Assembly: GCF_037042905.1 (NCBI RefSeq)
Contig: NC_087257.1
Span: 14,632,001-14,696,000 of the forward strand
DNA: 64,000 bases
Reading direction: 5' to 3'
Source: Lytechinus pictus
Lineage: Eukaryota
The notes under the pieces were generated by a model, which searched no databases, was not told the DNA's origin, and was given only the letters and a program-made list of their open reading frames with translations. This document shows positions 1 through 41,247 of the stretch, one piece after another. The number at the start of each line of letters is the position of its first letter. The stretch's first letter is position 1. Made by a program: the position numbers and the translations under genes.

Positions 1-344
1 AACTTGGGAGCTCTTTAAGCTGCTGCAAATTGGCAACGCACACATTTACATACAACCACGATGCAAATTTACAAACAAAAATATTGAACCAAGCAAACAG
101 TAAGGGGAAGAAAAAGAGGGAAGGAAATAAAAAGAGGATACACACATTAAATGATGCAATGCAATGCAATGCAATGGAGAAAGCTGCAAAATCATTTAAA
201 AAAATAGTATTATCACAGAATAATATATATATTGAAAACAAAAGCATATTATATGGCATTCAATATAATATACCAGAAGCTTTGATTACAAATTCATAAT
301 GCAAATCAATTTGAACTACATGTATGTCAAGGTAAAAGTAATAA

Positions 345-926
345 AGGGCAAGTTCACCACAAAGTTGATTTGTATGAATCTAGAGGAAAAAAATCAAACA
401 AGCATAACACTGACAAATCATCAAAATCTGCTGTAAAATAAGAAAGTTTTGATAAAAATTATAAGGTTCTGCTTTTATTCCCCAGAACATCCTGATCAGT
501 ATGCAAATATGGAACCAACGAAGTCACCCACTCACTATTTTTTTTTTGTACAGTATGAAGTACTCATTTTCCTCATTTTAAACAAGGTACTGTATTCTTT
601 CTCTTTGAAACTGTGGAATTGCCATTGCCACTATCTTTTCACTGAAGATCTTTTCATGATATTGTGAAATCTGAAGAAATTGAGATTTTCCATATTTCAT
701 ACAAAAATTAGTGATTGTATGTATAGTATGAGATCATCGCCTGTCTTATTTGCATATATCACCTGTGTTGTATTTGCATAAATGTACCAACTAATTTGTG
801 AAAAAAGCAAAACTTTTGAAATTTTATATTTTGAAGCTTGAAATTTCAGCGCTATACGCTGTATTTGGGTGGGGGGGGTTCTCTTCTATTTGAATATTTT
901 TTTTTGTAAAAGGGTGGACTTGCCCT
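345..926. mobile_element. Kolobok-like MITE
   Basis: TIRs AGGGCAAGTTCACC / GGTGGACTTGCCCT|TTAA. Related copies at 13528-13694, ~35751-36016 and 50510-51099. Confidence 0.75.
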
Positions 927-1660
927 TTAAAGCCATGATTTTTTTTTTTTACCAGAAACAAAATGGTTCTACAAAAAGGATGCTGATGTAGAATCCACAC
1001 TTTAATTTAATCTTATGGATTGGATTCAATGTTATCCATTCATGTATACATGTTTGTTCATGTACAATGTAGTTTGCTGAAAACATTTTTTTTTTCAACA
1101 TTCCCACATATTTCTCTATAAATTATCTGAAATGTATATGTATCTCATGCTAAACCTTGAAAATGGTGTCTAAAATTATCTGCAACGCAGTCTGGACAAA
1201 ATAAAATTGGATAGTGATATTAAAGTATATAAAGTCTTGAACTACATAAGCCTACATGTAGTACATGTAGCTCCTCTGGCCTCTTGCTTCAATGTGTAAT
1301 GTAGGGTAAAGCGAAGCCTAATCCACTGGCGCGCAATAGATCTGCAGTATAGTATGTTCGTACACTTTGGTCAATGAACGCATAACGGACTACCAACAAT
1401 GGTCCGTCTCTACAGGGCACATTATCCCAGTATCATAGCACATTGGAGCTAACTTTATGCGGATGTCTCACTTGGCATTTCATAAACACATCAAGGGAAC
1501 GTTGCTGTCGGCTATAATTACCCAGTCTAAACAACACGTCAGGACAGGGGTTCCAGTGTGTGGGACTAGAGCAATTTATTTTGAGCCGCATCACACCCTA
1601 GTCTCAGCTCCAGACTGCTTGTCCATATTATCATTATATTTCAAGTTAAATTTTTATTTT

Positions 1661-1940
1661 TAAATAATAATAAACAGTTCTTGTATAGCGCATATCACGA
1701 TTATGAATAAATGTCTCTATGCGCTTCCAAAGGACTTGGATATTATTACCCCAGCTGTAGCTTGGCAGCCGTAATTACTAAGATTACAGCGCACACGCAT
1801 TTCAAGGAATAAATTCCTGCCAGGTACCCATTCACCTCACCTGGGTTGAGTGCAGCACAATGTGGATAAATTTCTTGCCGAAGGAAATTACGCCATGGCT
1901 GGGATTCGAACCCACAACCCTCTGTTTCAAAGTCCGGACT
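1661..1940 (-). mobile_element. tRNA-derived SINE (5'-truncated head)
   Basis: The reverse strand has B-box GGTTCGAATCCC (~1901-1913), a core TGAATGGGTACCTGGCAGG and a (TTA)n tail at 1661-1673. Confidence 0.7.
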
Positions 1941-2626
1941 GTAAGTTAAAGACTGTAAGTTTGATTCATAATTTTAAATCATTACAAACATATCTTGAAT
2001 AAATGTTAGAGATTAGAGATTCAATCTAAAATCAAATATGGATGTAAATTTTTTAATGAAAATTTTGCACTATACGTGTAGCAGTGCACACTAATGTTTC
2101 CACTCGCACTACATGTACATGTATCTTCCTTTCTTTTTGTCGATATTACCCAACACTATAAAATACAAATTGACTTCCTTTTTTTTAATCAATTTTTATC
2201 ACTAAGCTAGAAACATGACGAATGGGGGAAGGAGGGGGCAAAAGAAAATACATGTAGGTATTTAAAAGCCATCGATTTTTCTAATTCTAGAGTAGAATTA
2301 CATGTATAGGCAGCCAAAAGTATCAAGACCTTCATGTTATCTTGGCTCTTTTTTTGAGTGCATATGTAATGCAGTCTGAAGTAGGAGACTAGATTTACTT
2401 CATTCAGATTCAGATTCAGATTCATCTATCATTCACTCAATGCTGCTTGATTCAGAATGCAATGTACTTTGGAGTCTAGTCTCCATCCTGGACATGGTAC
2501 CCAAAATTGGTGTCAAAATTGAGTCTGTGCAGACTAGTCATCACTGTGTATCTATGTGTATTTGTATATTTTTATATAAAAAACATTCAAGACTGAAGAG
2601 GAAGACTAGCAAATCCTTACACGTAA

Positions 2627-3211
2627 AGGGATACTCCCGGCTGAAGATATTTATATCTCAATAAATAGAGTAAACTTTACAGAGCAAAATGCTGAATATT
2701 TGATCAAAATCGGATAACAAATAACAAAGTCATTAAATTTTAAAGATTGGCATTATTCCGGTGAAACAGTTTGAGGCATGTCTTCATGAATATTCATTAG
2801 GTGGGCTGATGATGTCATATCCCCGCTTGTTCTTTTGTATTTTATCATATGAAATTAGGTTTATTCAAAAATTTTCTACCAAAAACTAAAACAATTGGAT
2901 TGACAACTAATTAAGTGCATTAATTGCTGCAACTTATTTTGTCACAATGGAGGCACATCATTTACACACATATGAACAAATGAAACAATTATGATTTCAT
3001 GAAATCACATATTAGAGGAAAGAGGGGATGTGAAATCATCAGCCCAAATAATGAATATTCATGACGATGTGCATATAACCATTTTCACAAAATATTGCTA
3101 AACTTTAAAATTCAATAACTTTGCTACATGTATTTGTTATCCGACTTTTGCGTTTTGCTCTGTGAATTTTACTATATTAAAGATATTAAATATCTTCAGC
3201 CTGGAGCATCA
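2627..3211. mobile_element. Kolobok-like foldback MITE, same family as 29628-30209
   Basis: Shares ATGAATATTCATTAGGTGGGCTGATGATGTCA arms and the terminal sequence with 29628-30209. Confidence 0.8.
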
Positions 3212-3797
3212 TCCAATAAGACATTTGTTTGACAGTGAAAAATGACCCACAGAACCTGTATTGTTTATATTGCCATAATGATGTCTAGAAACTGAAACCA
3301 AAATTGCCATCAACTTTGGATCATAATCACATTTAAAGTTTAAAATTATAGCATGTGCTTTAAAGTGTACATGAATGGAGAGAAATGTGTACATGTATCT
3401 AGTCATACAGCACTCAGCGGTACAAACATAAAGCAAGCAGGTACTATAAAACGAGTAAAATACACGATACAATATCCAGGCATAATCCAGGCATACACTG
3501 ATTTTACATGATATGTAGGAAACTTAGAAAATAATTGAAGAAAATGATTTTTCTGATTCTTAGTATTAAAAAGCAAATGCTCTATTTTTTTATTTGTAAC
3601 AGAAACAGAGAAACTTTTTTGATGAACAGAACAGTGTACCTCAAACCGGGAATAAGTTTCCTGGTATCGAATTGCAATTTGGTCCGAAGATTTCAATTAC
3701 TGCAACACAACATTTCTTGTGTGTAGCAAGAACTGTACAGAACATAGTTCGAAGCTTTGCTCAAGATTACAACCAGAAATGCTAATTTGAGAAGTAA

Positions 3798-4655
3798 AAC
3801 AAGTAGACCGCCTCTGGCAGTCTCACCTGCATTATGCAATTCAATATAGCAGCAGTGCTGACTTTGAAAACAACTATTGAATGATCATTCACAAAAAACA
3901 CCATTCATATGATAATACCTGAATGACCTTTGACCTTGATCATGTGGCCTATTAAGACTCGTGCAAAGTGATACATTTACTTGATTAACCTTTCGTCCTT
4001 GTTTTATGAACTAGATCCATAAAGTTTCAAAGTTATGAAGGCAATTCAACAATACCCCCAACATGGCCAAAGTTCATTGACCAATAAATGACCTTTGACC
4101 TTTGTCATGTGACCTGAAACTTGCACAGGATGTTTAGTGATACTTGAATGCTCTTACATGTATTTCCAAGTTTTATGAACTAGATCTATTAACTTCTTAA
4201 GTTATGATGGCAATTCAACAATTACCCCCCAACATGACCAAAGTTCATTGACCCTAAATGACCTTTGCCTTGATCATGTGTCCCAAAACTCAGGCAAGAT
4301 GTTCGATGATACACCATTACTCTTATGTTCAAGTTTCAAGAACTAGATCCATAAACTTTTGCGTTATGACAAAATTTCAAAACTTAACCTTTTAAGGTTT
4401 CAATGTTGATTACCCCAACAGGGTCTATGAAGTCCATTGACCCTATATGACCTTTGACCTTGGTCATGTGATGTGAGCTGAAACTCAGGCAAGATATTCA
4501 GTAAAAGTTGATTACCCTTATGTCCAAGTTTCATGATCTAGGTCCATATACTTTCTAATTTATGACGACATTTCAAAAACTTAACCTTGGTTTAAATCAT
4601 GTTGACGACGCCGACGTCGCTGCCGCCGGAAAAGCGGTGCCTATAGTCTCGCTCT
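3798..4655. mobile_element. Non-autonomous element with internal ~170-190-bp tandem units containing TGACCTTTGACC (possibly Helentron/HINE-like)
   Basis: Starts AACAAG and has four related units (motif at ~3924, 4089, 4259, 4448). The class assignment is an inference. Confidence 0.55.
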
Positions 4656-5470
4656 ACATTTAGTCCCTGCTCAAATAAAAAAAAAATATATATATATATG
4701 CAGAAACAAATATCCACTGAACAGTTTTGACAACAAGCAAAGTGCTCTTCATTCATCTCAAGCATGAAATTGCATATTGAAGAACAATATCATAACAAAA
4801 TTTCTGCATCATCAATTTATACTGTCACTGGTTCCACGAACAATGAGATGAAAGAATGAAGAGACTATGGTTTACCATTATCCGATGACGATACTAGGGT
4901 TGTATGTACAGTATGGGTGGCATTTCAAAATAATCACAGAATAGTATAGAGGGTTAATAGTTAAGAATACTATTAGGAAGGGAGTTTGGCTGACCAAGGC
5001 TGTGTTCAATCAATATTTCAAAAACCTAGAAACAGTTTTAAAGATATTTGATTCAACCACAGTTGCATTCAAGCAAGTTTGGTTACAAAAAATTGGAGCT
5101 GCAGAATCACAAAGTCCAATAGACTGCACTGCAAAGTTCATTAACAATTCTTATTAAAATCAAACGATCCAGTTTTGTATGATGCGCAGTGGATGGGCTT
5201 TAATAAGGACAGCGATGAAAACTCACTTGAATGCTATCCTGCATATTAAGGATTTATTTTTTGTGGTTCATTTTTGAGATTCTAGTTTTAAAACATTAAC
5301 TGAACACACCAGAAGGGCAAACAGATGTATACGTATTATTCATTTGTTACCTTCCAAGATTTTTCTGGTCGACCCTTTGCAGTTTAAAATCACATTTGAA
5401 GGAAAAAATAGCAGAGGGTCATACTTATTACGAAAATAAACTACAATGCTGCATGTATACTGAAGGTGAT

Positions 5471-5924
5471 AATAGACCAGTTCGTAGTTACTCATGGACA
5501 ATTTTAGTCAAATGACCTTTCATTTCTTTCATTATTATAGGCAGATTTCAAAGCAAGATATTACGTAAGCTTGCCTTACATAGCAGGATGAAGAAATTGA
5601 ATAGACCAGGTGACTAGAATAGCACACCAATGAACACTTAATGAAGGTATTTGTTGCATTCCTACTTTGAATGCATATCATAGCATGTTGCACAATGTAC
5701 TTGGCTAACTGTGAAATACCAGTCGTTGTGGACGCATTGTTGTTTTTTGTGGATGTAAATGAAAACCACTATTCAAAAGAATATATGCATAATCAAGACA
5801 TCAAAGTTGGTGCTTATCTCATTAGATTTTAAACCACCATGTCACGTTAATACAAATGACCTTTCTCTGATCATGCGTAGAATCTTTTGATCATGCGCAG
5901 AAAGGAACTATGAACTGGCTTATT
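5471..5924. mobile_element. MITE
   Basis: TIRs AATAGACCAGTTCGTAGTT / AACTATGAACTGGCTTATT. A partial inverted relative lies at ~15290-15464. Confidence 0.65.
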
Positions 5925-7691
5925 ATTCAAGCAGGGATTTACAGCTAAATTCCAGTTTAAGAAGCATCCCACATACGATACAGATTTTGAAAAGTTGACT
6001 GTACTCTTTGACACTGAATATCTCTATTAAAAAATAGAATTATTGATAAGTACTGTCTAATTGTTAAACCTGCTTTGTGCATCATAACATATCAACTTCT
6101 TATATAGCACACATCAATCACTGCTGTAGATTGAATTAATTTTTTTCCAAGAAAAACTGCAGAGATAAATACAGTTTATCAATTCATTGTTAATCCCAAT
6201 ACCACAATTTAGTTTCACGAAGTCTCGCGATCGATCATGGGGCTGATATTTACAAAATTGATCATACACATTAATCAATGCAACCAATCATAGAATAGAA
6301 AATATCAGCCTTCATGATCAATCACTACTATGTTATGGAGCCCAGAGTTATTTATGCAAGAGATTTCCCCGCATCGATCATGGGTGAGGATGTAAAATCA
6401 ATTTTAATATCCTGTCCCTTCTTCCTTGAAAACCTGCAATCCAAACTACAAATCAGTTTGAATGCTTCACTTCAGAGGAGAAATTAGGTGAGCTCCAAAA
6501 TGACCAGCAAATGATAACTTGCAAAATATGTTTAGTAGTGATTTTTAAATCGTAATAATTTCTGTATGTGAACTCCCTTGGTGTATGGCGTCAGTAGATG
6601 GATGGATGCATTCCCTGCCATTGGCAATGCACAGAACAAACATATGCTGAATGCAAAAATTCACTTTCAGTAGTCATGATAATACATGTACATGCATTAA
6701 AGGAAAGCTACTTTTCATAAAAATAGAACTTCTGCATGTTGTTGGATTGGAATGGGAGGCATACTTACAGTCTTTTTTTCTTCTTGTTGCATTTTATATT
6801 CCATATCCATTTTCTCGTCAACCTGAGCAAACAAAAAAAGAAAGTACAGAGACAAAGAGTAACATTTACGATTTTGTGTCGAATTAGTATTGAGTGTATT
6901 CAAATTAATGTGTAGAAGGGCACAAAGCAAGGAGAGAAAGATTGTAACAGAGCCCTGGATGATAATGAAGCATCAACAGAGAGATATTCAAGATGTATTC
7001 ATTCAATCATTGCAGCACCAAGGCTGAATTGCCACTGAATTCACAGTGAAGAAGAAAAAACCATATAATTAACTGCACATAATTTCAGCTACAATAAAAC
7101 AATTTTTACAATAATTCCAATTTACAAAAATAATTCAGATTAGGTCAATCAATTCCAATTGATGTTTCTATTTTCAATAAACAATGATAATTACAATTCA
7201 CAATGATATATTGTGATATATTTACATATATTCCATAAAATTGAGTGTGAATGGGGATAAAAGAGATGATGGTTAGAACATGTGGGGTATACATGTAGAT
7301 TATCCACAGCCTCGATAAGCGGGTCTTTAATTGATGTCCAAGTAACTGGACATATTGTTTCAAAGAAAGAATAAGCAGTGTTTTGTTGCATAAAATGAAT
7401 AAATCAAGACTTTTGCCATAACCCTTTCAATAATTTGTGAGTGCGGACGATGGGCCATTTCGCCAAAATGAATGAAAAGGTTGACGATCAGAAGAGTCAG
7501 ACTATCTCATTATTTCATTGTTTTTATAGTTTGCAAAACCTTAAATTGAAATCTACCCTATCGTAACAAGAAATCTTGATTTTTTTATACTTTCACATTT
7601 ATCATTGCTTGCTACAACTAGAGTATGTGCTATTAAAAGCTAGAAGGTTCTTTTTTTAAATAATTACTACATGTACATTTGAAAGGCTTAC

Positions 7692-7778
7692 TTCTTTTTG
7701 TTGCTTTTCCAATTCCAACATTCTGATTTTCCTGGCCTCAGCCCTCGCTTGCCTTCTTTGAGCAAGCTTCGTTTCCGC
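7692..7778 (-). CDS. LRRFIP2: LRRFIP1/2-like, coding exon 2 (gene continues leftwards out of the window)
   Basis: tttttcag|87 nt|gtaagc, phase 0-0, encoding AETKLAQRRQARAEARKIRMLELEKQQKE. The vertebrate LRRFIP counterpart is [29 protein letters not shown]. Confidence 0.92.
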
Positions 7779-8299
7779 CTGAAAAAAAGTAAAACAAAAA
7801 ATAACAAGGAAAATGAGAAGTGGTCACGAAACAAATCATAATCAAGATTTAATTTATTGCATTTATGAACAGTGAAAGTAAAATCGCAACACTGTAAATA
7901 CTCATCCACAAATTTTTGCTCAAATAAAATAATTTGTTATATGTGTAGTAAGTGTTGACACTTACCCATGCAATCTGCTTTTCGCCTTCCCATACAACAA
8001 AATGATTATGAAGTCCCAATTCAAAGTGCTTATCAATAAATTAGACTCGCTGTAGGAGTGATTTCAGTATTAAATATTGAAAATAGAAACTAAACTTAGT
8101 TTTGAATAGGATATCATCATGATCGAATTAAGTGTTTCCAAAGTACTATCACCATAAAAAGAGGTTTTGAAAATGGGAAGTCCTTTAAAGATGTGTTCAA
8201 TTTTGGTGCTTACATTATCTTAATACACACATACGAACCCATATCAGGCGCAGCTCCAGGGTGACACTTTTGCAGGCTGCAAACTTGTCTACAGTGTAT

Positions 8300-8962
8300 A
8301 TTATTTGACCCCCCCCCCCCCACCAAAAAAAACAAAAACACATCATCGCTCATTTTACTGGGTGCGCAATGAAGGCATTCTAAGGGGAGCACCATTAAAT
8401 TTTCAAATTGAATATTTAATGGGGTGCACCTAAACCTTCCGCCACCCCCCTCCCCCTGGATAAGCACTTGCATATCACAGGCAACTCTAAAGAATTAATT
8501 TGTCGAAGAAGAAAAATTAAGAGCATTGTTTGCTTGTTGTTTGTCAAGTAATTTGCAATAGAGTACGGTAAACATAACATTAACAAATTAATTTCATCCA
8601 ATTGATGTGAACTGATGCAAGGAATCTGTGACCCCCCCCCCCCCAAAAAAAAAAATCATCGCTCATTTTATTGGGTTTGCAATGAAGGCATTCTAAGGGA
8701 AGCACTACATGTATATTATATTTTCAAATTTGATATTTAATGGGGTGCACCCACACCTTCCGCCACCCCCTCCCCCCCCCCCCCCCCCCCCCCCCCCGGA
8801 TAAGCCCTTGCATATCCCGGACAACCCTAAAGAATTAATTTGTCGAAGAAGAAAAATTAAGAGCCTTGTTTGCTTGTTTGTCAAGTAATTTGCAACAGAT
8901 TTTAACATAATATTAACAAATTAATTTTATCCAATTGATGTGAACTGACTCAAGGAATCTGC
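8300..8962. repeat. ~340-bp tandem duplication
   Basis: AATTTGTCGAAGAAGAAAAATTAAGAGC at ~8497 and ~8837, with matching flanks. Confidence 0.85.
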
Positions 8963-9910
8963 ATAATACAAAAGCATGAGTCACAGTCATTGTTAAAAAC
9001 TAATAAATCATTGACCTGCACCTGATCTATCACTCCAAGGTGAATCATGACTTGCATTTTCTTCTTCACATCTGGATAATATCACCCCATCAATTTATTC
9101 ATACAATATACAATTCTATAATATATTCGCCAATGAAATAATCATACTGTTATCACAATATTTCGACTCGTCTGTTTTATTCAAGGTTGTCTACAATGTA
9201 CAATGTACTTTCATTATATTTTAGTAAGGGTGGAAAACGCCATCACTCAACAGCCCTTTTCCTCCCTTTTCACCTTTTGTGTTTTTAAAGTACAGCGTAT
9301 AAAACATATTATACATTGTTTTTACACGTACATGTTTAGTGAGAGAAACCTACATGTAGCTAGCATACCTGAACCTCACATAAAAGTACTGTATGCAACT
9401 GTGGTCCCATGTGATAAAGTCTGCACAGTCATATTGTATCACATCACACATGCACAAATAGGAGCACCGAGAATCAATAAAATCATCGCTGTTCAAAGCA
9501 ATTCATCATTTTATATGAAACAGACTCAGGTCCTTAGTGCTGCCAAAAACATATACCTGTGAGCAAGTGTGGCTGGGTTATTGCTTTTTATGTGGCATCT
9601 TGTTCAGCTACCGGTAATAATAATATATTGACTTGCTTGGGTATATTTTTTCATAGCAGGAACATGCAATATTTTTATTCTTTTAAGGGTTTACAAACAG
9701 ATTTCCAAAATGCACTTCACCCATAATTGTGTTAATAAAAAAAAATGTTTTGGGTGGTGTTACAGGTTGGCTTACCATACATTTTATTTCAAACTGGAGG
9801 GGGGGTCTCAAGTACTGTACATTGTATGCCTACATGTATTGCCAACCAAAGATAATTCAGATGTTGTTTGAAGGTTTACATGGTGGTACATGTACATGTA
9901 TAAACAATCA

Positions 9911-10622
9911 CGAAAGTGGTTTACACCTAATACGGTACACCATGTCTGAAGTCCTGAGATACATGTAAAAGTGGAAAGAGATAGAAGTGAAATGGAAAGC
10001 GAGAAAGTGGAGGTTTGGAAGTACAGGCAGAGTATTCTTTTCAGAATGAGTGGAAACCAGGAGTGGAAAGCTGAGTAGTAGGGAGGGGTGAGAGGCTTCG
10101 GTAGAAGGCTTGAGTAGGAGGCTGGTTGGGTGGGAGAGATGAGAGAGGTTTGAGTAGAAGAGAGAAGGCTGGCTTGAGTCGGCAAATCAGGACTGCGGCA
10201 AATGGAGCTGTAGAGCCGGAGCAGGGGAGACTCAACGTTTCGGGCAGGTTGATCGTCTTAAGGAGTGAGTGCCTGGGTGGACTCACTCCTGAAGATGAAC
10301 AGTCAACCTGCCCAAAAGATTGAGTCTTCCTGCTCCAGCTCTACAGCTCCATTTGCAGACTCAAGCCAGCCTTCTCTCATCTACTCAAGTCTCTCTCACC
10401 TCTCCAACTTAATGACAACTCAAGCCTCTCATCCTGCCTTCTACTCAGCTTTCCACTCCTTCTTGTTTTCAGTCCTTTTTAGGACTACATTCATTCTGAA
10501 AAGAATACTCTACTTCCCAACCTCCACTTACTTGCCTTTCCATTTCACTTCTACATGTATCTCTATCCACTTATATTGGTCCTTCCAGGACTTCACACAT
10601 GGCGTACCATAAACCACTTTCG
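9911..10622. repeat. ~710-bp diverged, nearly spacerless inverted repeat
   Basis: The left arm (purine-rich) and right arm (pyrimidine-rich) are reverse complements about a centre near 10274, e.g. AGGAGTGAGT / ACTCACTCCT and CGAAAGTGGTTTA / TAAACCACTTTCG. Confidence 0.9.
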
Positions 10623-11501
10623 CAAAAAGATAATTAAAGCACTGACATAGCAAGGTACCTCACTCATTGCTAGCAAAACCCATTGAACTTGTTTTTGTTC
10701 TTCTTTGGGGCCCCTAGTTGTGGTTTCCATATAAAGTTCCAGTGTTCTGAAGTCTAATTTTGGTATTTGTAAGCATTAAAATACTATACAGTATAGTACT
10801 TGAGGGCAATCCAACCATTTTGATTTACATTGAGAAAGTAAAATAAATAAAATTCAAAATATTGATAACAGGGTGGTGGGTAGAAATTTTTTTCAAATAA
10901 ATTGTCACACTGTACATACATACATGTATGAAGATGAGCCAGAGATGTAAAAAAAATCACTATATATACATTGCATGTATTTTGTGAGTATATTATGACA
11001 AATAGCAGGGGCAACTATCCAATTACGAATTTCACAAAATAATATATATATAAGGGCAATGCAGTACGTGTTGATGACTGTTTTGGATCTAGAGAAAAGT
11101 GGGAAGCAAAATGTGGGGAAGGAGTAAATAATACTAGATAGATAGCTGAATCACTTGAATGTATATTTATTGTCAGAAAAATGCATACATGTACATGTAT
11201 TGCATATTAATATAAAGAAATTATAGTTAAGTGTACATGTATATAAGACAGGGAAAATGCATGTTGAGGGGATTTTTCCAGTAGATCCTGTAATAAAGGT
11301 AATAAAGTAATAAAGGAATATAATTGAATTATAAAAATTATGAATTGAATTATCTGTTACCTAAATGTACCTACATGTATGTAGTTATACTGGTTCATGT
11401 ACATGTAGTATGTACAGTTGGGAAGGGAAAGAAGGTGGAAGGGCAGAAGGGGAGAAAATGGGGAAGATAGAAAAAAGGAACTACAAAGCAAGATAAGAAC
11501 A

Positions 11502-11657
11502 NNNNNNNNNNNNNNNNNNNNNNNNNNNNNNNNNNNNNNNNNNNNNNNNNNNNNNNNNNNNNNNNNNNNNNNNNNNNNNNNNNNNNNNNNNNNNNNNNNN
11601 NNNNNNNNNNNNNNNNNNNNNNNNNNNNNNNNNNNNNNNNNNNNNNNNNNNNNNNNN
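11502..11657. other. Assembly gap (N run)
   Basis: Run of Ns. Confidence 1.
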
Positions 11658-12624
11658 AAGAGGAGGAGAAAACAATGACAAAGAAGAAGACGAAAACATC
11701 AAAGACAAAGGTGAAGAAGAATAGATGAAGTATTACCTAAGAATACAAGGGAAAGAAAAAAAATCATGTCAGGAATTTATGAAAGATTAGAAAGAAAAAA
11801 ATAAAATGAAATGACAAATGGAACATAATTAATGTTTAACAAAAAGCAACAACTACAAGGGTACTGTAAAGTATTACATGTCAAGTGTTTGTCTATAAGC
11901 CATGCTTTATCCCCCCCCCCCTTCTTTTCCATTCAATATCAATCTTTTTTGTAATAAATAATTTGTTTTCAACATCAAAATTATAAAAAAAAAATTGTTA
12001 GCTTTAATTATTAAACTGTGAGCATACTGAAGCACTTTCATCAACATTGTTTTTTTTTTTTTCAATTGATAAAAGCTGTCAATAAACCATCTTGAGTGCA
12101 AAAAAATGCTATTGGTGCATTTTGCAAGTGCTTTCAAATCAAAATTATATAAAGTATTTTTTATTCTATTAAAGTAGGGATTTCCCTTTAAAAATCAGTT
12201 CTAATACCTTATGTTTGGGAATTATCAAGATCCACAAACTTAAAATATGCATAAATATCAAGCACCAGCACCCCCCCTCCCCTATCCCAATGGGATTTCT
12301 GATTATTCTTCCTACATACACTGTACATGAACATTATGTAATTTGGAAGTAAGGGTCCAATACACCTTTGATGTTCTCAAACTGTTCATTCCATCTACAT
12401 GTACATCTATGTGATAATTTGTATTTAAAGCAGAAATAAAATAAAATAAAAATGTGCAAGAATTTTGTGCTCTTCTAACTTTGATTTTGACAAGTTAATG
12501 TCAGATGAAAACAAAAGATAAATTATTGTAAAAATAAAACGATTACATGCATCTCCCCCCCCCCCCATTGCTTTTTTACTCTGCATTTCTATGTGCAGTA
12601 CTAGTATCCCATGGACTCTCTCAA

Positions 12625-13033
12625 TAGGAGGTGCTGCATCATCCCGATTTTGCTCAATCTCCAGATTTTAGCCCGATCGGCCCTCTTCGCGATTAATCTC
12701 GAGATTCAAGAAACCCTGTCTCCACCATCGCAAGAAGAGCGATTCCTGCTCGAGCGAGGCATCGATGCATTATGGTCTGACGCCGTAAATAAATAATCCC
12801 AAGTGCCTCTGCACCTACGAATTAGCGCGATAATTCGTAAAATAGCGCGCTATTTTGCAAATAATCCCAAGTTGACTTGGAATTGCAATCTTGAGACTAA
12901 TCCTACTGTACGAACTAGCGCGATAATTGCGTCTCCATTGCAAACATTCTCGAGATTGTTCAGATCGGGATAATTAGCCGGATCAGAAACAGCGCGCTAA
13001 TTTGAAAACTCGGGATGGTGCAGACGACCCTAA
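12625..13033. mobile_element. MITE with internal AGCGCG repeats
   Basis: Imperfect TIRs TAGG..GTGCTGCATCATCCCGA / TCGGGATGGTGCAGACGACCCTA; CpG-rich compared with its flanks. Confidence 0.65.
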
Positions 13034-13936
13034 TGTGATGTAGTATGTACATGTACTTGTAGAGTATTGTACATATTGAAAATTGTTCACATGATCAGTA
13101 TGTTGTACATGTAGGATAAAATACTATGTAATGATAAATCTAATCTGAAGAAAAAAAATGTAGATGTATTGTATACTAGAACACAGTGATTTGAATGATG
13201 TGGAGCTTTTTAGCATCTATATGAGGACCATTCCATGAAAGATCATTGCTCTTTTATAATATATTTATAATATAAGCCATTCAGATCAAGAGATACAGTC
13301 TGTGATCTCAGTAGCTTAGCACCGCAAATTCTCTTCATGATATGCTCCCCTGTATAAAAAGCTCAGTGGTCGATTACAGTGGGTGATGTAATAATATTCA
13401 ACACTCACCTTTTCTGCTTCCTGTTACATGTAGGTCAAATTGACAGAGAAATTGTGACAAAAATTACCAAATGACAAAACATGCAAACTATAAACAAATA
13501 GCAACAAACTTCTTTTATCGTCATTAAAGGGAAAGTTCGCCAAGCTGATAATAACTTGGTTTTTAATACAGGCAGAAGAAAAAAGAGAACAAATATTGGT
13601 GGTTTGATGAAAATTCATCAAGGAATAACCAATAATATTTTTCTCTATTTTTATCCAATGTACAGTACATGTATCATCAAGGTGAATTTCCCCTTTAATG
13701 ATATTCTTCCAATTAATGGGTTTGTAATATTTATGTGAAACTACAATTTACATAATACAAAAACATTAACAATGTACTGTACTTCAAAATTCCATTTGTC
13801 ATAATATCCCAATTGGCTTGAAATATCCCAGAAGTTCATATCGTCATTCATGAAACACACCTTTGCATTTAACACTACCCTGGGCCCTGGTACAACAATG
13901 CATCAATCACAGAGACAATGATGTACATGTACATGT

Positions 13937-14334
13937 AGGTGGTTTCAAACCGCCTCGATAACAAGAATCCCTGTTATTATTCCTGCATTCACTCCGCCCC
14001 GAAACATACCCTTCAGGATACTGTAAGTTCCTGAAGTTACGAGCATGCGCAGTATGGTCTGATAAGCAAGCAAGGGACGAGATTCAAAATCGCTAGCTGA
14101 GCATCCACCCACAGCGCTCGCATCCAACTACATGCTGGGCAAAAAGTTTCTATAATTTGCTTTCAGTTTCACACTGCCAAAATACCTGCGACCTTGGAAA
14201 AATTCAAAGTTCTTGTAATTTGACAAGTACCTACATGTACTATTTAGTGGGTATTTTCTTTCGGAGATTACATGTAATTTCACACTGCCAAATTACCCGG
14301 AAGGGAAGAACTTTGAGGCGGTCTGAAACCACCT
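13937..14334. mobile_element. MITE
   Basis: TIRs AGGTGGTTTCAAACCGCCTC / GAGGCGGTCTGAAACCACCT. Confidence 0.75.
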
Positions 14335-16419
14335 TTTGGGATTTTGGACCTCTTTGATACAGTGTTCAGTACCTGATGGGGCTAATTTCAGAAGAGCTTG
14401 AAATCAAACGCAGCTCTTTATTTTCAACCTAACAGGTTGCGTACTGTATATTGGGGACTTGCGCTTGACTCTTTCTACATATGTACAAGGTTTTTATTTT
14501 TCCTTTCATATCGAGCTCAAATAATAGAAATGGTAATTTGCAGAAATATTTTGGAGGATAAGTCACCATCAGCCCAATTGTCTCTTTTATTCTATTTTTT
14601 CAATTCATTATTGGGGGGCGGGCTGATATGCAGTGTATTTGCTTGTCTCATTCATCCATTGTTTGTTTATTGCTTGTTTTGTCTATGCTGGCTCATGGGA
14701 TAATTTGCAGTATTAAAGCCAGTTACCCACGTACTGTAGTAACCACAAGTATTATACCAGAACACCATGTACGTGTAGCCTACAGTCTGTAGACCATGAC
14801 AGGTTCAACATTTGATTGCCAATTATAATGATGTATTTTCAATGTTGATGGAAGGTCATACAGTATGTAATGTTGTTCAGAACAAATGTAAGCGTATGTA
14901 AAATTAGGTACCGGTAAACATGTTTTCTTTCAAGGGAGAGAGTTTGTGAAGGGGAAACAAATTTTGTCATACTGAACACTGTAATTTTAATAAGCACCTT
15001 GTCTTGACAGTTCACCAATGCAATAAGCCTGTTCACGGTTGTAAACTGCGCACGAGCAGAAAAAGGTCATTGGAGACAACCATGAAGGTGGCTTTCAAAT
15101 TCACTGACATAGGCATTTGTGATTTGATGATTATTCATGTATTCCTTTCAAAATATTTATCACGTCCAAGCTGAAGATTAATAAATAGAGCCTTCATAAT
15201 CACTGGTATTTGACAGTAGCCTAAACAATAGTCAAATGTGCCAAAGGCAGACAATAAAACAGATTTCCAAACTTTATCCCTGATGTACATGTACTATTCT
15301 AGTCACCTGGTCTATACAATGCCTTTTGTTCTTAGAATTTGAATACTCTACCGGTAAAGCTTACGCAACATCTACATTTGAAAATGATAGTGCTTATCCT
15401 AATGAAAAATCACAAAGGTCATTTGAGAAAAGTTGATCATGAGCTAACCGTGAACTGGCTTATTGTCATCATTGTCATAATTTTCACCTAAAAATATCCT
15501 TTACATATCAACAATCAACATCATTACCATTGTACTTTGATAATATAATGCTAATTGAAATAATGATTATCATTTCAATAAGCATTTGATATATTTTGAA
15601 CATCATTATCAGATATTTAAAATCACTATTACATTAATTATCAATTTCATTCCCAATATTGATATTGTACAAGTATGTAATAATGTACTTGCAGGCCGTA
15701 CACATTGTACATATTGTATATTGTATTGTAAATCTGTCGTTTTTTACACACATTACATGTACAATATGTACTGTACGAAAAACGTTATTTTACACATTAT
15801 ACTGCAGATATCATGAGCATCTGATGCATTTGGCTGAATGATTATTATGGCTACCAACATCCAATCACTTGTGAATATAAATGCATAAGAGCACAACTGG
15901 CCTATTAAAATGAATCCAATTACGATGCCCATCCAACCCAAGGCAGTATGCAATGTGTATGGACACTCAAAAAGGAATTTTCATACCCACTTACTCACAG
16001 AAAATACAATCTACCTGGTACTTTGCTAGTGTGAAAGCATATTAATCATGATATTCTTGAAAGAAAATACTGGAAAGTAGATTTTTAAAAATATATTTTT
16101 TTAATACATGTACAAGATCTTTCACAGGAACTTCTGCATGGTCACAGTTAATATCCTTTCTTTTGATATTTTGATATATAACTGTATGCCACTTCTGAAT
16201 ATCATATAAAATGAGCCTTGAGAAGGCTGGATAAGAAAAATACAGGCATTCTTGTGATTGAGGGGGTATAAATGCACCGAAGAATGAAGGCTTAAATGAC
16301 TGTCGTGCTGTATTGAAGAGGTCATGTCTCAAATCTGTGGTAATGTGGAATGCGGTGTCTTCCTCCGGCTTAACGACCGGTCAGTTTAAGATACAGGGAG
16401 AGAGAGGGAGAATCACATA

Positions 16420-16973
16420 TACCCTTTTTACACAGGATTTTCTTAGCCCCGGACTATCGCTAACCCCGTACTATCCTTAACCCCGTACTATTTTTTTTCC
16501 TTTTCACACATGCCAAATTGTTATTTCTAACCCCGGATAAGGAATGCTTGCTTTTCACACACGAAACTCGCTAACCCCGGACTAGTGGTTTTTGTCGATC
16601 ATTCGTAGTACAAGTACTTCACTCGTACCTTTTTTACACACGCTAAAATTTCCTTAACCCCGTACTTTAGGTGGGGCCAAATTGCCATTTAGCCCCACCT
16701 ATAGTACGGGGTTAAGCTTAGCCCACTTTCGTTTTACACTAGCGATCTTAACCCCGTACTATCGCTCTTAGCACCGCAATTGCTGGGATAACCCTGCTTT
16801 TTTGCAGGGCCAAATAATCCCGTACTAAAGGTGGGGTTAGCCCACTTTGCAAAAATGCTGTGTAAAAAGAAAGTGGGCTAAGCTTAACCCCGTACTATAG
16901 GTGGGGCTAAATAGCAATTTAGCCCCACCTATAGTACGGGGTTAAGGAAATTTTAGCGTGTGTAAAAAGGGTA
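16420..16973. mobile_element. MITE with many subterminal TAACCCCGTACTA repeats
   Basis: TA-CCCTTTTTACACA...TGTGTAAAAAGGG-TA; the repeated motif occurs in both orientations. Confidence 0.8.
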
Positions 16974-17759
16974 ATAGAGAAGAAGAGAGTGAAGAGAGAC
17001 AGACAGTTCAGATGAATATAGATGCCATTGGAATGTGTACATGTAGAGAGGTGGACAGTTATTAATGAGGGGAAATACATGTATTATAAAGAAAAATATT
17101 TGAAATAATAATAAACAAGCAGAAGTCCCTGATGGTCCCATTTGCATGTACTGTACGTTGGGCAATTCCTTTATTATGGATTTCATAATTTTATTATACG
17201 GTAGTACATGTAGATGTACCTATACAGGTTACAGGTACATAATGTGCAGACAGTGCAGCTCCTCATTCCTCTCTCCCTTGACTAGCTGTGGCCTGGATGT
17301 TCTTTCAAGCAATCTAGCCCTGTATTATTTGTTCTCCTCATAATGTGCACTCCTACAGTAAATGTATGCGTTTGTGTTTATTATGTATGTACATGTACTG
17401 TAGGTTCAAACTTCATAATAAATTTTGGAGGCATAAAATTTATTGCACAAGTGATATACAATTAAATTTCTTTAAGAGCTACAGGGGACATGGGTATTAA
17501 AAGTGCATGATTACTTAACATTTTCTAATAATTTAGTCAGGGTTGTTTGGTAATGGAGGGCAGGGGCAAATCTCAATCCACCTGTATTTTGCGAAGGATA
17601 ATGTACTGTGTATTAAAAGTTACATGAGTTGGAACCAACTGGCATTTCTAAAGTGTAAAGACCGAGAGACAATGCACAGTAGTATATCAAAGGGTTCAGA
17701 GAGAGTTGAAAAGAGAAGATGGAATGCTGAGTGACCTGAGATGATACCATACAGTCATC

Positions 17760-18110
17760 ACTGTGTGATGTAGGCAATGACATTCAATTACAGCCAAGTT
17801 TTCATTAGCCCCCTCAAAGCCGATCTGCATACAAGTGTGGTGGGATACAACTACAAAGGCCATATTTTCATTAGCCCTTTAATCTACTGTGTGATGACAC
17901 TCATCTACATGTACAACAGCCACATTCTCATTAGCCCTTTCACAGCTTTAATACATACATGTGCATGTACATGTACAGTATACATGTGTATATCCTGTGA
18001 TGGCATTCAGTGGTCACTGGTCATATTTTCATTAGCCTTCTCAAAGCAAAAGCCTTTGATCTTGATCACCGTGTGATGACATTCAACTACAAATGTATTT
18101 TCACTAGCTA
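17760..18110. repeat. Degenerate ~60-100-bp minisatellite, 5 units
   Basis: Recurrent GTGTGATG...TTTTCATTAGCC. Confidence 0.6.
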
Positions 18111-19951
18111 TCTCAAGCACGTACAACGTAGCTACAATGTAGCTTTCAGCTTAAACTTGAATACACATGATGTACATCTACATGATGTTTCATTTGTTTT
18201 AATTCATTAGCACCAAATCTGTTTATTTTTCATTTATAATTTTTTATTTAATTATTAAATGGCATAACCTGGGAGTTGTGAACTTCCTGCTATAACACAT
18301 GGATTATAAAATACCGTCTTGATATCGGCTTCTACATACATGTATCCATTCCTGTGGACAGTGATTCAATACTTTTCTGAGATTGTCACGCTATACATGT
18401 ACTGTACATCATGGTTATATAAGAAAAAATAAGTGACAATTTAAGCATAACACTGAACTGAGCCATTCAATTTTTCATGGTACAACAGACCAATAATGTT
18501 GGTATGTGTTCAAATCTAGGGCACAGCTGCACCTATTATGTGCCAACCACTTGAGATTTTATTTCAAGGGAATGCACATTATGTGATGAACTTGCTTCAG
18601 GATTGGTGCAGGCAAAAAGGTGTTAGAACTCCATGACCCTCGGGACGTGTCCTCACAGGCAAGCTAGCGGTGGCACATTCATACAGAATAATACATGTAA
18701 AAGACCCTCTCTTCTGACAACTTGTATTTTCTCTGATTTCATTTGTAGTTGCAATACTCATCTTCCGATGTCATCCACATTTATGTACCGCAGTACAAGT
18801 AGTGCATGAAACTTGTGTCTCTTCACAAAACCTTAACTTTCCATCACAACAGATTTCTATGTTGCTCATTTTTAAGCATGATTAGGGTCAATGCAAATCT
18901 ACATGTATATGCATCATGCATGAAATCTGGTGGGTGTTTCATAAAAGCTGTTCGTATTAAAGCGATTTTACGAATGACTAGACTTTCTTGTTGTAAATGA
19001 TATACATATATATGTACATGTACATGTACAGTACATGTATATAGGGCTACACCAATTTCATTGATTGATGTTTATTTAGTGCCCAAGAAAGAATCGTCAG
19101 TCATTTGTAAAATCACTTGTAAGTTGTAACTTTATATGAATAGCTTTATGAAACACCTATTACATACTGTACATGTAGGTCCTACGAATCAATGAATGAC
19201 ATTTCCCTCTTAAAAGTGCAGATTTTTTTTCAGCCTTTGTCTTGCCTTCTTGTTTTTATAATACTGTTCTTGATATTTCAACTTTGATTTCCTCAATTTA
19301 AAATCGAATAATTTCTGACAACTACATTTAAGATTACACCAACAAACTAATCTAGGAAAGCAAGGCAAGCATAAATTTCTTTTAAAAAGGGTATTTTATT
19401 TCATGGCTACTGTACACTTCATTCAAGTCATGGAATGCTCTCATCTCTTCAGGGATACAGCTTAGGGATTGATCATGGCAGGGGCTGATGTACAGTATAA
19501 TGATCGATAGCATCGGTTGTAAAAATCAGCCTCACGATCAATCTCTAAATTTCATAATGCGGGTCCCTGACCCTGATTGGAGAGCTTTGTCTCTCGAAGC
19601 ATTTAATTATATCCAACTGATGAAACAAGGCGTTTGCTTGGGGGGTGGGGGCTCATAACCCTGCCACGCATCCACATCTACACGTAGAAAAGCATTGAAA
19701 ACCCTAGACCAAAAGCTTCAGTCTCTGTATTTTGGTTGTTCAGCTGAACTGCGTTGGCTCACTCACCAATACATAGACTGAAAAGTTGTTGGCCCGTACG
19801 GTACAGACAACGTATTAGCAGTAACGTTAGATTTAACATTCAGCGGAAACCCAATTTTCGGATCGTTTTTTTGTACATAAAATGTCACATTATAAAAATG
19901 AAATTACATCCGAGTTGACAAGAAAATAAATAGAATTCAGAAATATTGTAC

Positions 19952-20250
19952 CTTAGGCCGCAGTTACCGCTAATTCCTTTCAAATGATGATCAAAACAGT
20001 CATCTTCGATCCTTTCGTTGGTCAACGTAAGTTGCCATCTTGGATGAGGTCATCATCCTTACAGACGTATTTACCAGTGGCTATATATAGCGATTTGTGC
20101 TGCTGCTTTTCGCTTGTAGATGTGCGTGCGTTCGGAACTTGTCACTCGCATTGATTGGCCAGGATACCGAAAATTTAATCAGAAAGCCTTGATAAAAGCA
20201 CAACTCATTGAATGTAGAGGGTAGCAACACACGGCTGCCATTTTTTCCTC
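19952..20250 (-). promoter_or_regulatory. Candidate internal promoter and non-coding first exon within LRRFIP intron 1
   Basis: Locally CpG-rich. YY1-type motifs on the minus strand (CAAGATGGC ~20034-20042, AAAATGGCAGC ~20234-20244), a CCAAT box (ATTGG ~20154), and a donor CCTAAG|gtacaa at 19952/19951. Confidence 0.45.
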
Positions 20251-21295
20251 TCCAGCAGAAAGTAACAAAAATAAGGAATAAATCATCGGAAACGTATATT
20301 TTCGATATTTTCTGGGAATATGTATAGTATCAAAAGAAAAATTAGAGTCTAACGAAAATAGTGGGCCTTCTTTCAAGATAATATAATGTCATTTAGAATC
20401 TTTAAAAAAATACAAATCTAGACAAAACCCGGTCGCCCGAATTGGTGGACCCGATTACACATGCAGGCTCGCACTAACACACTACTGTCGGTGAATGGGG
20501 ATGATAGTAAAATGTCAGAAATTGTTAAATAAATCCCCAGAAACGACGGTTATTCCTGTCTATGAAAACCCAGACTCCAGAGACCCGGAAGTTGTTGACA
20601 ACTTTTGGAATAGGGGTTGCCTTTTGAAAAAGAAAAAAAAATCACTCGAAACCACCATTTTTTAGCTAGACAATATGTTTAATATATGGTAGGGGGTCCT
20701 AGAGCTGCGCGGGTCCTAAAGCTACGCACCACTCATCGCGCATGCAGTTTTTAATGGCAAATGCGCACTTTGTGTGTGGAATTGTGACTGCAGAGTGACG
20801 AACGATTCCTAATCAATTTTTTCTACAGAGGCTGCAGTAAATCCTTAAATGCAGAGAAAAACCACAACTGTTTGGAATTTTGGAGTTAGATTCGCTTTAA
20901 TTTCATATTATCCCATGATAATATGAACATATTTTAGAAATTGAGGCACAGGAAATACTATTTTTCTGCATGATAAATCGAGTGCGTAGCTTTAGGACCC
21001 CTTCTAACATCGGGCGGCGAATTCAAGAGGTGTTCGGAAAACACGGCGGGATTTTCGTTTAGAGAGTTTTGTGATATTTTTTCCTTCCTTAATGATCTTT
21101 AGAATATTTGCCATAAATTAGTGAAAGATAATTTGTTCAAATATTAAAATTGGCATAGTTATTGTTTGTAAACGAAGTGCGTAGCTTTAGGTCCCCCCAT
21201 CATAATTGTCAAACAAGTCAAAGTCTTCGCTAAAAAAAAATAAAAATTCTATTACTATTAGACCCTCTAAGGCTCTATTTGGATGTTTGGATTAA

Positions 21296-21703
21296 TACCC
21301 CTTTCATAAACCCAATTATGCGGCTAATAGCAGCATAATTTGGTCGTAAAATCAGAGGAGGACAAGTCAAGAGTTATCCGCATTATTCTGATGCTGCTAT
21401 TATCCGCATAATAGCGGCATCGGGACAAGATTTTGAGTTTATGAACGTATTTCCAAATAATGCGGATAATGCCATGGTGCGGTCACAAGGTCACCCTTTT
21501 CCAACACAACCGCATCGGAGGGGGCGTGTCCAGTTGTCATGACGATTATCCGCCTTTTTCAGGACGGGCTCTCGTACAAATAGGCCTAATGGAGTAATGG
21601 GGATAATTTTCGGAGTTTGTGAACGCAATTTTTATTGAATTATCCGCATTTCTCTTAGGCGGCTAATTGGAGGAAAGGTTTTATTGGGTTTATGAAAGGG
21701 GTA
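21296..21703. mobile_element. MITE with internal TTATCCGC repeats
   Basis: TIRs TACCCCCTTTCATAAACCCAAT / ATTGGGTTTATGAAAGGGGTA. Confidence 0.8.
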
Positions 21704-29627: not shown

Positions 29628-30209
29628 AGGGATGGTCCGGGCTGAAAATATTTATATCTTAATACATAGAGTAGAATTCACTGAGCAAAATGCCGAAAAT
29701 TTCAATAAAATCGGATAACAAATAATAAAGTTATGGAAGTTTAAAGTTTAGCAATATTTTGTGAAAACAGTCGTCATGAATATTCATTAGGTGGGCTGAT
29801 GATGTCACATCCCCACTTTCCGTTTTCTTATGTTATTACATAAAATCGTATTTTTTTCATTATTTCATACTTGTGTGAATAATATGTCTCCCTTGTAATG
29901 AAATAAGTTGCAGCAATAAATATCTCATGCACTAAATCAGTTGTCAATCCAATTTTTCTAGTTCTTGGAGGAAAAAAATTGAATAAACCTAATTTCATAT
30001 AATAAGATTCAAAAGAACAAGTGGGGATGTGACATCATCAGCCCACCTGATGAATATTCATGACAACTGTTTTCACAAAATATTGCTTAAACTTAAAATT
30101 CAATAACTTTGTTATTTGTTATCCGATTTTGATGAAATTTTCGGCATTTTGCTTAGTGAATTCTACTCTATTTATTAAGCTACAAATACTCTCAGCCCGC
30201 ACCATCCCT
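29628..30209. mobile_element. Non-autonomous TTAA-flanked foldback DNA transposon (Kolobok-like), nested in an older related element (~29547-30568)
   Basis: TTAA|AGGGATGGTCCGGGCTGA...TCAGCCCGCACCATCCCT|TTAA with long internal inverted arms. Family copies at 2627-3211 and 40657-41247. Confidence 0.85.
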
Positions 30210-30991
30210 TTAAGTACGGGATCCATTGATGTTATACACTCACTGTTACAAATATTTTTGTTTCAATCTAATCAATATTCTAAATTTTCCCAAATTAACG
30301 GTACAGTTTGAATCGATTTTCCGTTAAAATTGTGAATCAATGAAGAGGGTTTTTTATCAACAGTAAAATTGAAATATTTTGTTGATATTACATAATCACA
30401 TACAAAAGAAAAGGTATGACGTCATCTCCCTCATGTGCATACATGCCAGGGTAATAAACTTATATAGCGATGTCATAACTTTCGTTTTTACTAACTGATG
30501 AAATTTTCAGTGCTTCTCCTTCCCTACATCAATTATCGCATTGTTGTTATGGGATGGACTTCACATTTTAAAAAGTACTTTAAGAGGGGTGATTGCTTCT
30601 TACAAAGAGACCATCGCATTTTTTTGTGTGGCAAGTTCCAAAAGGTCCTCCACCTTCATCAATGTCTATGAAAACTTGCGAGCGAGCAAAATTTCGGCAT
30701 TTCAATGACAAAAAAAAAATTGCAATAGATCATGACATAATATTCAGAAAATAATATCATATTTCACCCTTCTCTCTTATCTTTTTCTTTCATAACAATC
30801 TCTTCTTTTTCTTCGTCGTGAAAAAATGAGAGGGAGGGGGCAAGCGCCCCAAGCCCCCAATATATATGTTTGCCACTTAATTGCCTGGGCCTGTCAGTCC
30901 AATCGTTTGAAAAGAAAATATTAGTCATTCGATGTTGCTGTTGAAGATGTTGGAGACGCGTGGACCTAATTATGTTCGCCATATTGCATTC

Positions 30992-40426: not shown

Positions 40427-40656
40427 ATTACACATCAAAAGACGTTCCATTTATGAAAATGATAGTGTTTTACAAACTTTTTGTCTTCAGGATATTACCC
40501 CCCCCCCCCCCGTGGACGTCTATTCATTATCTATATTTATGATTGAGGGTTGTTGATACCGATTATCCTTGATTTATAGAGATAGGCCTACTGGACAACT
40601 TCTTTCGAAATAAATATTTTATAACTTTCCATAAATCTGACCGCAGATTAGATCAA

Positions 40657-41247
40657 AGGGATGCTCCAAGCTGAAAATATTTATATTTCAATAAATAGAG
40701 TAAAATTCACAGAGCAAAGTGCTGAAAATTTGATCGAAATTGGAAAATAAATAACAAAGTTAATGAAATTTAAAGATTTGCATTATACTGGTAAAACAGT
40801 TCAAGGCATGTCTTCATGAATATTTATCATGTGGGCTGATGATGTCATATCCCCACATGTTCTTTGTATTATATGAAATGGGGTTTATTCAAAAAAAATT
40901 CTACCAAGAATTAAAACAATTGGATTGATAACTGATTATGTGCATTAGTTATTGATTGCTTCAACTTATTTCATCATAATGGAGACACATCATTTACACG
41001 TGTATGAAAAAAATGAAACAATTCATGTTATAACATAAGAAAAATGGAATGTAAGGATGTGACATCATCAACCCACCTAATGAATATTCATGACAACGTG
41101 CATAACTTTTTTCACCAAATATTGCTAAACTTTGAAATTCAATAACTTCGTTATTTGTTATCAGATTTTGATGAAATTTTCAGCATTTTACTCTGTGAAT
41201 TTTACTCTTTTTATTCAAATATGAATGTTTTCAGCCCGGAGCATCCT
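40657..41247. mobile_element. Kolobok-like foldback MITE, same family, in SULT-A intron 6
   Basis: AGGGATGCTCCAAGCTGAAAA...TTTTCAGCCCGGAGCATCCT|TTAA. Confidence 0.8.

Follow-up and report, generated by a model that had tools for sequence, protein, structure and literature searches.

What process writes one and the same eight-letter palindrome, TACATGTA, dozens of times into a single gene and then stops within a few hundred bases? The question is raised by a 64-kb stretch of the Lytechinus pictus genome (G000:C13:14632001-14696000, hereafter the window), the first 19.2 kb of which contain part of a gene encoding an LRRFIP-family protein. Here we present evidence that the copies of TACATGTA are very probably excision footprints, or scars, of Tc1-type cut-and-paste transposons. 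The window was analysed together with 100 kb on each side (264 kb in total); negative coordinates denote bases upstream of the window start, and features are given without strand unless one is stated. The ratio of observed to expected CpG (CpG o/e) was used as a sequence proxy for methylation.

A bounded field of micro-insertions

Within the window, TACATGTA is found 52 times between positions 317 and 19177 (2.7 per kb) and is absent from the 44.8 kb between 19178 and 64000. The initial annotation had estimated 35-40 copies by eye, which was too low, but had correctly seen none beyond 19.2 kb in the window. Dinucleotide-preserving shuffles yield 1.37 copies per 64 kb, with a maximum of 5. When the k-mers of the first 19.2 kb were contrasted blindly with those of the remaining window, TACATGTA ranked first, and TACAGTA/TACTGTA was enriched too (22 against 2.3 expected). 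Six tandem doubles occur, and the 20-nt flanks of the 52 sites are mutually unrelated, which shows that no larger repeat carries the motif.

The motif had been thought to be limited to the first 19.2 kb. The profile of the 264-kb stretch corrects this: the field starts upstream of the window, at about -23.6 kb, continues at the same density to +19.18 kb and, over these 42.6 kb, accounts for 91 of the 147 copies of the whole stretch (2.1 per kb). After 19177 the next copy lies at 65822, 46.6 kb away. The +6 class, that is, TACATGTA itself, is accompanied by TA-anchored insertions of other lengths, in the window part of the field (317-19177) as in the field as a whole. Compared with the numbers expected from CpG-rich DNA, the 42.6-kb field contains 91 copies of the +6 class (6 expected), 35 of the +5 class (TACAGTA/TACTGTA; 8 expected), 74 of the +4 class (TACATA/TATGTA; 36 expected), 14 of the +7 class (TACA-N-TGTA; 1.9 expected) and 8 of the +8 class (TACA-NN-TGTA; 1.4 expected). 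All classes summed, there are about 4 TA-anchored micro-insertions per kb, amounting to roughly 2% of the sequence of the field.

Since the sites are restricted to putatively methylated DNA and an assembly gap (11502-11657) falls inside the field, the pattern could be suspected to be an assembly or sequencing artefact, produced for instance by methylation-dependent base-calling errors. Both edges of the gap are purine-rich low-complexity DNA. The flanking segments of 5 kb, with 16 and 12 sites (CpG o/e 0.34 and 0.58), resemble each other in scar density and CpG depletion, and the finding of the field is independent of continuity across the gap. Moreover, a Logan contig of the public run X1 matches positions 18250-19731 without any difference, nine copies of TACATGTA included, although X1 may derive from the assembly's own sample or individual and would then not be fully independent. 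The insertion of a constant hexamer at TA, with no CpG in the insert, and the transposase-like target context of the sites (see below) also argue against an artefact, which we regard as extremely improbable.

Genome-wide, TACATGTA occurs 224,046 times, against 29,568 for TATGCATA, a palindrome of the same composition. This is a 7.6-fold difference and an excess of about 194,000 copies. The copies are clustered: pairs 200-230 nt apart number 5,953, compared with 1,917 under a uniform spread (3.1-fold), and the local density seen from a scar is about 0.86 per kb versus a genome mean of 0.28 per kb. The LRRFIP field is at the dense end of the genomic range. Upstream of all genomic sites, in the 31 positions at a distance of 12-42 nt, we counted 93,178 CG and 197,996 GC dinucleotides, a CG/GC ratio of 0.47. 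Within the 264-kb sample, depleted domains have ratios of 0.42-0.48 and CpG-rich DNA has one of 0.85, and a simple two-class mixture calibrated on this one region places roughly 90% of genomic TACATGTA in CpG-depleted DNA. The reversed word ATGTACAT is also far more frequent than TATGCATA (85,448 copies), but tandem scars, and scars with CAT behind them, overlap it, which makes it an unclean control. In the literature, our searches turned up no account of scar fields, nor of this motif as a footprint.

The end of the field is sharp. The last scar occupies 19170-19177, in a boundary interval (19001-20000) where CpG o/e steps from 0.23 (19001-19500) to 0.94 (19501-20000), so that the field ends within 500 bp of the step. 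Over the 264-kb stretch the number of scars is inversely correlated with CpG o/e (Spearman rho -0.42, p 6.5e-7), and CpG-rich DNA carries only 0.14 TACATGTA per kb. However, the neighbouring depleted domain from -64 to -24 kb has the same CpG o/e as the field (0.41 against 0.44) and only 0.40 copies per kb, and the depleted domain from +100 to +120 kb has 0.30. These comparisons indicate that CpG depletion is necessary but not sufficient, and that each transcription unit has a scar density of its own. The earlier proposal of a process directed at a methylated gene body is thus right about the tie to CpG-depleted DNA, but too simple, given neighbours just as depleted with 5-7 times fewer scars.

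The gene in question is read from the minus strand. One LRRFIP exon lies at 7668-7778 (minus strand; PF09738 positions 1-37) and two further minus-strand PF09738 exons at about -12.1 kb and -14.9 kb, an order that places the 5' side of the gene towards the boundary at 19.2 kb. Judged from these three mapped exons, the extent of the field fits a minus-strand LRRFIP unit. Scar density climbs towards its 5' side (rho 0.59, p 0.004), and the scar at 7668 sits about 20 nt inside an intron, past a GTAAGC donor. Reads over 15500-21400 gave no RNA signal locating the LRRFIP transcription start site, their tables being dominated by repeats. Just past the field boundary, 19637-21400 is a block of very high-copy repeats on which RNA reads of run X21 pile up from genome-wide copies, and the LRRFIP promoter is therefore not placed. 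Further upstream, the domain from -64 to -24 kb contains minus-strand kinesin-like open frames (SMLEIYNEQVRDLL, TNMNATS) at about -36.5 kb and -48.3 kb (L007-L010), and a seven-transmembrane-like open frame of 292 amino acids lies at -65999 to -65124, in CpG-rich DNA.

Insertion at TA and a probable footprint mechanism

The polarity of the change can be read from repeats that carry the motif in one copy only. We aligned the 264-kb stretch to itself and found that 19 of the 147 sites fall in alignable repeats. Twelve of these are in CpG-depleted domains, and for at least 9 of them the paralogue has an exact 6-nt gap where a TA remains, in agreement with the earlier claim that CATGTA is inserted at a TA. 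Outside these domains none of 6 alignable sites shows such a gap, the differences being single substitutions or inherited duplicates instead. This contrast shows that the excess copies are insertions and that the background copies are not.

Individual comparisons made in the initial annotation bear this out. A copy of an old foldback miniature inverted-repeat transposable element (MITE) at 2621-3210 carries one clean 6-nt insertion at 3125, where its relatives at 29631-30215 and 40655-41245, both outside the field, have a plain TA (at about 30110 and 41150). This family is 77-80% identical, about 590 bp long and TTAA-flanked, with ends AGGGATGCTCC...GGAGCATCCCT, and is probably of piggyBac type. 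The arms of the palindrome at 9960-10559 each bear an independent +6 scar, at 9960 and 10552, in different TAs. Likewise, a repeat unit has the motif at 4155 and a plain TA at 4320. In a further pair, the copy at 8706 has the motif and that at 8390 lacks it, as had been noted, but the gap between them is 8 nt rather than 6.

These comparisons bear directly on whether TACATGTA could instead have arisen by point substitution, such as CpG decay of TACACGTA or TACGTGTA, or from the base composition of methylated DNA. Decay does seem to account for one alignable field copy, at -42609, whose paralogue reads TACACGTA, and single substitutions separate alignable background sites from their paralogues. 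Substitution, which the initial annotation had put forward as the contrary explanation, thus covers the background and 1 of the 12 alignable field copies, but not the excess: clean 6-nt insertions make up at least 9 of those 12, the shuffles give only 1.4 copies per 64 kb, and the density of TACATGTA in the field is 14.7 times that of CpG-rich DNA, whereas control palindromes and words have field-to-background ratios of 1.0-2.6. As a source of the excess, substitution is already largely refuted, and we give it almost no weight.

The inserted letters are constant (CA+TG+TA) irrespective of the flanks, and hairpin or P-nucleotide and duplication mechanisms were rejected on this ground. In Caenorhabditis elegans, Tc1 and Tc3 are excised by a 2-nt staggered cut (van Luenen et al. 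1994, Vos et al. 1996). By analogy, an element with CA...TG termini would integrate at a TA, duplicating it, and its excision would leave 2-nt 3' overhangs, CA on each flank, that are not complementary. End joining that retains both overhangs would then convert TA into TA-CA-TG-TA, that is, TACATGTA. The +5 class has the form TAC(A/T)GTA, the known Sleeping Beauty-type footprint, which CAG-ended elements leave after a cut with a 3-nt stagger (PMC7827188), and the +4, +7 and +8 variants would be trimmed or padded joins.

The sequence around the scars carries a trace of integration. With symmetrised flanks, +6 sites have T at +3 with a frequency of 0.48 versus 0.31 at other TA sites of the field (z 5.9), and A at +1 with a frequency of 0.11 versus 0.32 (z -7.2). 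Sleeping Beauty integrates with the signature ANNTANNT (A at -3, T at +3) and prefers ATATATAT (PMC8934666). The scar sites thus show the same A(-3)/T(+3) preference as the targets of Tc1-like elements. Former (TA)n tracts are hot and carry stacked scars, which fits the preference for ATATATAT. In one such tract, at 19000-19045, four adjacent scars of the +6 and +5 classes are mixed (TA-CATG-TA-CATG-TA-CAG-TA-CATG-TA; TACATGTACATGTACAGTACATGTA at 19015-19039), and the compound scar TACATACTGTACATGTA at 19161-19177 consists of +4, +5 and +6 units in series.

An alternative is TA-specific micro-insertion without any transposon excision, through a domesticated nuclease or a CATG-adding repair pathway for example. 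In its favour, no occupied allele was seen, and for each resident copy that we counted in three CA...TG-ended families (described below) there are about 20 scars. On the other hand, the CA and TG of the insert are also the terminal letters of TA-flanked elements that abound in this genome, and the co-occurring +5 CAG/CTG insertions are the textbook Sleeping Beauty-type footprint (PMC7827188). Inserts made of P-nucleotides or duplications would depend on their flanks, and these are constant. We therefore hold a transposon-free process to be very unlikely, and excision by Tc1-type elements, as first proposed in the initial annotation, to be the best-supported origin; the bias may lie in integration, excision or repair.

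One-mismatch variants of TACATGTA give an indication of age. In the dense stretch from -24 to +19.2 kb (43.0 kb) we counted 78 where 29 would be expected; relative to the 91 exact copies, this excess of about 49 gives a ratio of about 0.54. With these small counts, the scars would be about 0.07 substitutions per site old had they been produced in a single burst, or would reach back to about 0.18 under steady accumulation.

Candidate source elements and confinement of the scars

The search for Tc1/mariner elements with CA...TG ends that the initial annotation had suggested recovered one Tc1 family and two MITE families, the latter by scanning the 264 kb for TA-flanked inverted repeats with such ends. 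All three read TA-CA...TG-TA, matching the inserted CA and TG letters. The Tc1 family is very young. Its element is 1,896 bp long (TA-CACTACTC...GAGTAGTG-TA), and 548 ends with at most 2 mismatches correspond to about 274 copies. For its transposase we obtained 150 scored matches without a stop, most of them with open frames of about 364 amino acids. The protein, of 342 amino acids, contains HTH_Tnp_Tc3_2 and DDE_3 as its only Pfam domains, with no chromatin-reader domain. Its nearest solved structure is the catalytic domain of SB100X (E 8.8e-29), and alignment to SB100X (5cr4) gives 34 residues from the second D to the E, that is, a DD34E transposase. The terminal inverted repeats (TIRs) are about 197 bp long; in L026 the arms are at 448-644 and 2152-2349 and are 80-91% complementary. 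Young DD34E copies of this kind are present at L024-L035 (for example L026:451-2346), and many genomic copies stand head-to-head, 1.2-1.7 kb apart.

The larger MITE family (MITE1; TA-CAAAGAGTTACGATTG) has about 15,900 ends genome-wide (TACAAAGAGTTACGATTG), and some of its copies are inside the field. The second, CAGT-ended family (TA-CAGTKGTRCTCAAAAG) has about 2,370 ends (TACAGTKGTRCTCAAAAG), and the two copies found in the 264 kb are both within the field. Two other repeats of the field were tried as the source and rejected for not having CA...TG ends: the TTAA-flanked MITE at 2621-3210, which ends in AGGGATG..., and a 560-bp foldback repeat at 16413-16981, which ends in TACCC...GGGTA. The latter is a young insertion with inverted ends TACCCTTTTTACACA; more than 40 scored copies elsewhere are 98-100% identical to it, and by this measure the family is very recently active. 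The copy in the field is not yet CpG-depleted (CpG o/e 0.79 in the bin 16501-17000) and has no scar, an uninformative state given that 1.2 scars would be expected.

Any account of the confinement is constrained by three observations: the border at the CpG step, the 5-7-fold differences between genes, and the flanks of 12 resident Tc1 copies, which carry 0.42 scars per kb, near the genome average and far below the density of the field. Taking CpG o/e as a proxy for methylation, we favour methylation-enhanced excision combined with local hopping over targeted integration. CpG methylation lifts the excision of Sleeping Beauty, Frog Prince and Minos more than 20-fold (PMC3680223). If local elements behaved alike, those residing in germline-methylated, compacted gene bodies would be re-excised far more often than those elsewhere, and would re-insert nearby by local hopping. 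A methylated unit, once entered, would gather runs of scars, and unmethylated DNA almost none. We propose that re-excision and local hopping would together give sharp, methylation-bound edges and, among genes of equal methylation, large differences by chance. A donor that still resides in the field was rejected as the origin of the hops, as no young Tc1 copy or remnant is found in the 264 kb.

In a stronger version, a Tc1-type element landing in a methylated unit would be re-excised almost at once and would hop locally, as in a pinball machine, until stuck in unmethylated DNA, the fields being then a fossil map of germline chromatin. We consider this 'pinball' version possible but doubtful.

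The serious rival is biased integration. On this view the scars would still be excision footprints, left by uniform excision, and it would be integration that the transposase, or a host factor tethering it, steers into transcribed or methylated gene bodies. The match between the field and a transcription unit, the rise in density towards the 5' side (rho 0.59, p 0.004) and the location of both 264-kb copies of the CAGT-ended MITE in the field are in its favour. However, the transposase is a plain HTH and DDE protein of 342 amino acids without a chromatin-reader domain, and the flanks of the 12 Tc1 copies are close to the genome mean in scars, although the sample is small and selection could purge genic copies. 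MITE1 copies, again in a small sample, are scattered over depleted and CpG-rich DNA alike, and known Tc1-like elements are only slightly biased towards genes (PMC8934666). Weighing these points, we judge biased integration to be rather unlikely, yet to deserve consideration.

Several observations weigh against excision footprints of Tc1-type elements, confined by methylation-enhanced excision, as the explanation of the field. From reads over 15500-21400 and from one foreign contig it was not possible to demonstrate an occupied allele, a polymorphism or an orthologous empty site. In the reads of four runs over that interval there were no rows of 6-nt indels for unique DNA, the repeats at 16288-17075 and 19637-21400 having swamped the tables. 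The search with the LRRFIP exon for orthologous introns returned only a 617-bp TARA Oceans scaffold (L036), with 88.6% nucleotide identity in the exon and unalignable introns. The young Tc1 is missing from the 264 kb, has only about 274 copies in the genome and is younger than many scars. On its sequence it does not appear to be a canonical inverted repeat/direct repeat element: a second ACCACTT, found about 170 bp inwards from either end, has the inverted and not the direct orientation, although these are short matches and may be due to chance. The 2-nt stagger assumed for local elements is borrowed from C. elegans Tc1 and Tc3. As for methylation, its effect on local elements would have to follow from the association of scars with CpG depletion, a proxy, and Tc1 and mariners were unresponsive in the very assay in which Sleeping Beauty, Frog Prince and Minos responded (PMC3680223). 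Finally, a simple methylation dependence does not predict 5-7-fold differences between equally CpG-depleted domains, and the confinement argument is weakened by the few resident copies sampled (12 Tc1 flanks). Separately, the ocean-plankton contig L036 and its LRRFIP exon reveal that a related, more distant marine species occurs in plankton samples.

Significance and comparison with known systems

The scars may record where cut-and-paste elements moved in the germline. Footprints are usually studied allele by allele; this genome has hundreds of thousands of them, and their limits follow chromatin-like borders to within a few hundred bases. Were methylation-dependent excision true, the fields would confirm in nature what has been known from plasmid assays alone, and scar density would be a free, sequence-only proxy, gene by gene, for past germline methylation and transposon visits. 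The pinball version, if true, would make excision scars a major domain-specific source of indels. Integration bias, if true, would instead mean that strong targeting of gene bodies is met for the first time in a Tc1-family element, a point of interest to the designers of vectors. Either way, transposon-driven indels shape the introns of particular genes, with about 4 micro-insertions per kb in this one, and each +6 scar adds six bases, in-frame.

Among known systems, Tc1 and Tc3 of C. elegans resemble the elements proposed here: they target TA, have CA...TG ends and leave a footprint that consists of the duplicated TA and two retained dinucleotides. They differ in scale: single revertant alleles there, about 200,000 fixed copies here, gathered in domains of 2 per kb. 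A survey of Asian and African rice is similar in taking a genome-scale look at recent DNA-transposon activity between two genomes, and its text uses the term 'excision footprints' (PMC4423477). It compares genomes, whereas our observations concern one 8-mer with a 7.6-fold genome-wide excess and sharply bounded fields. Sleeping Beauty, Frog Prince and Minos resemble the local system in their DD34E transposase, TIRs of about 200 bp, ANNTANNT context and TAC(A/T)GTA footprints, which are present here too. Sleeping Beauty itself leaves +5 rather than +6, and the inner repeat of the local element appears to be inverted, not direct. The raised excision of these three elements under methylation (PMC3680223) could, by analogy, account for the tie of the scars to CpG-depleted DNA.

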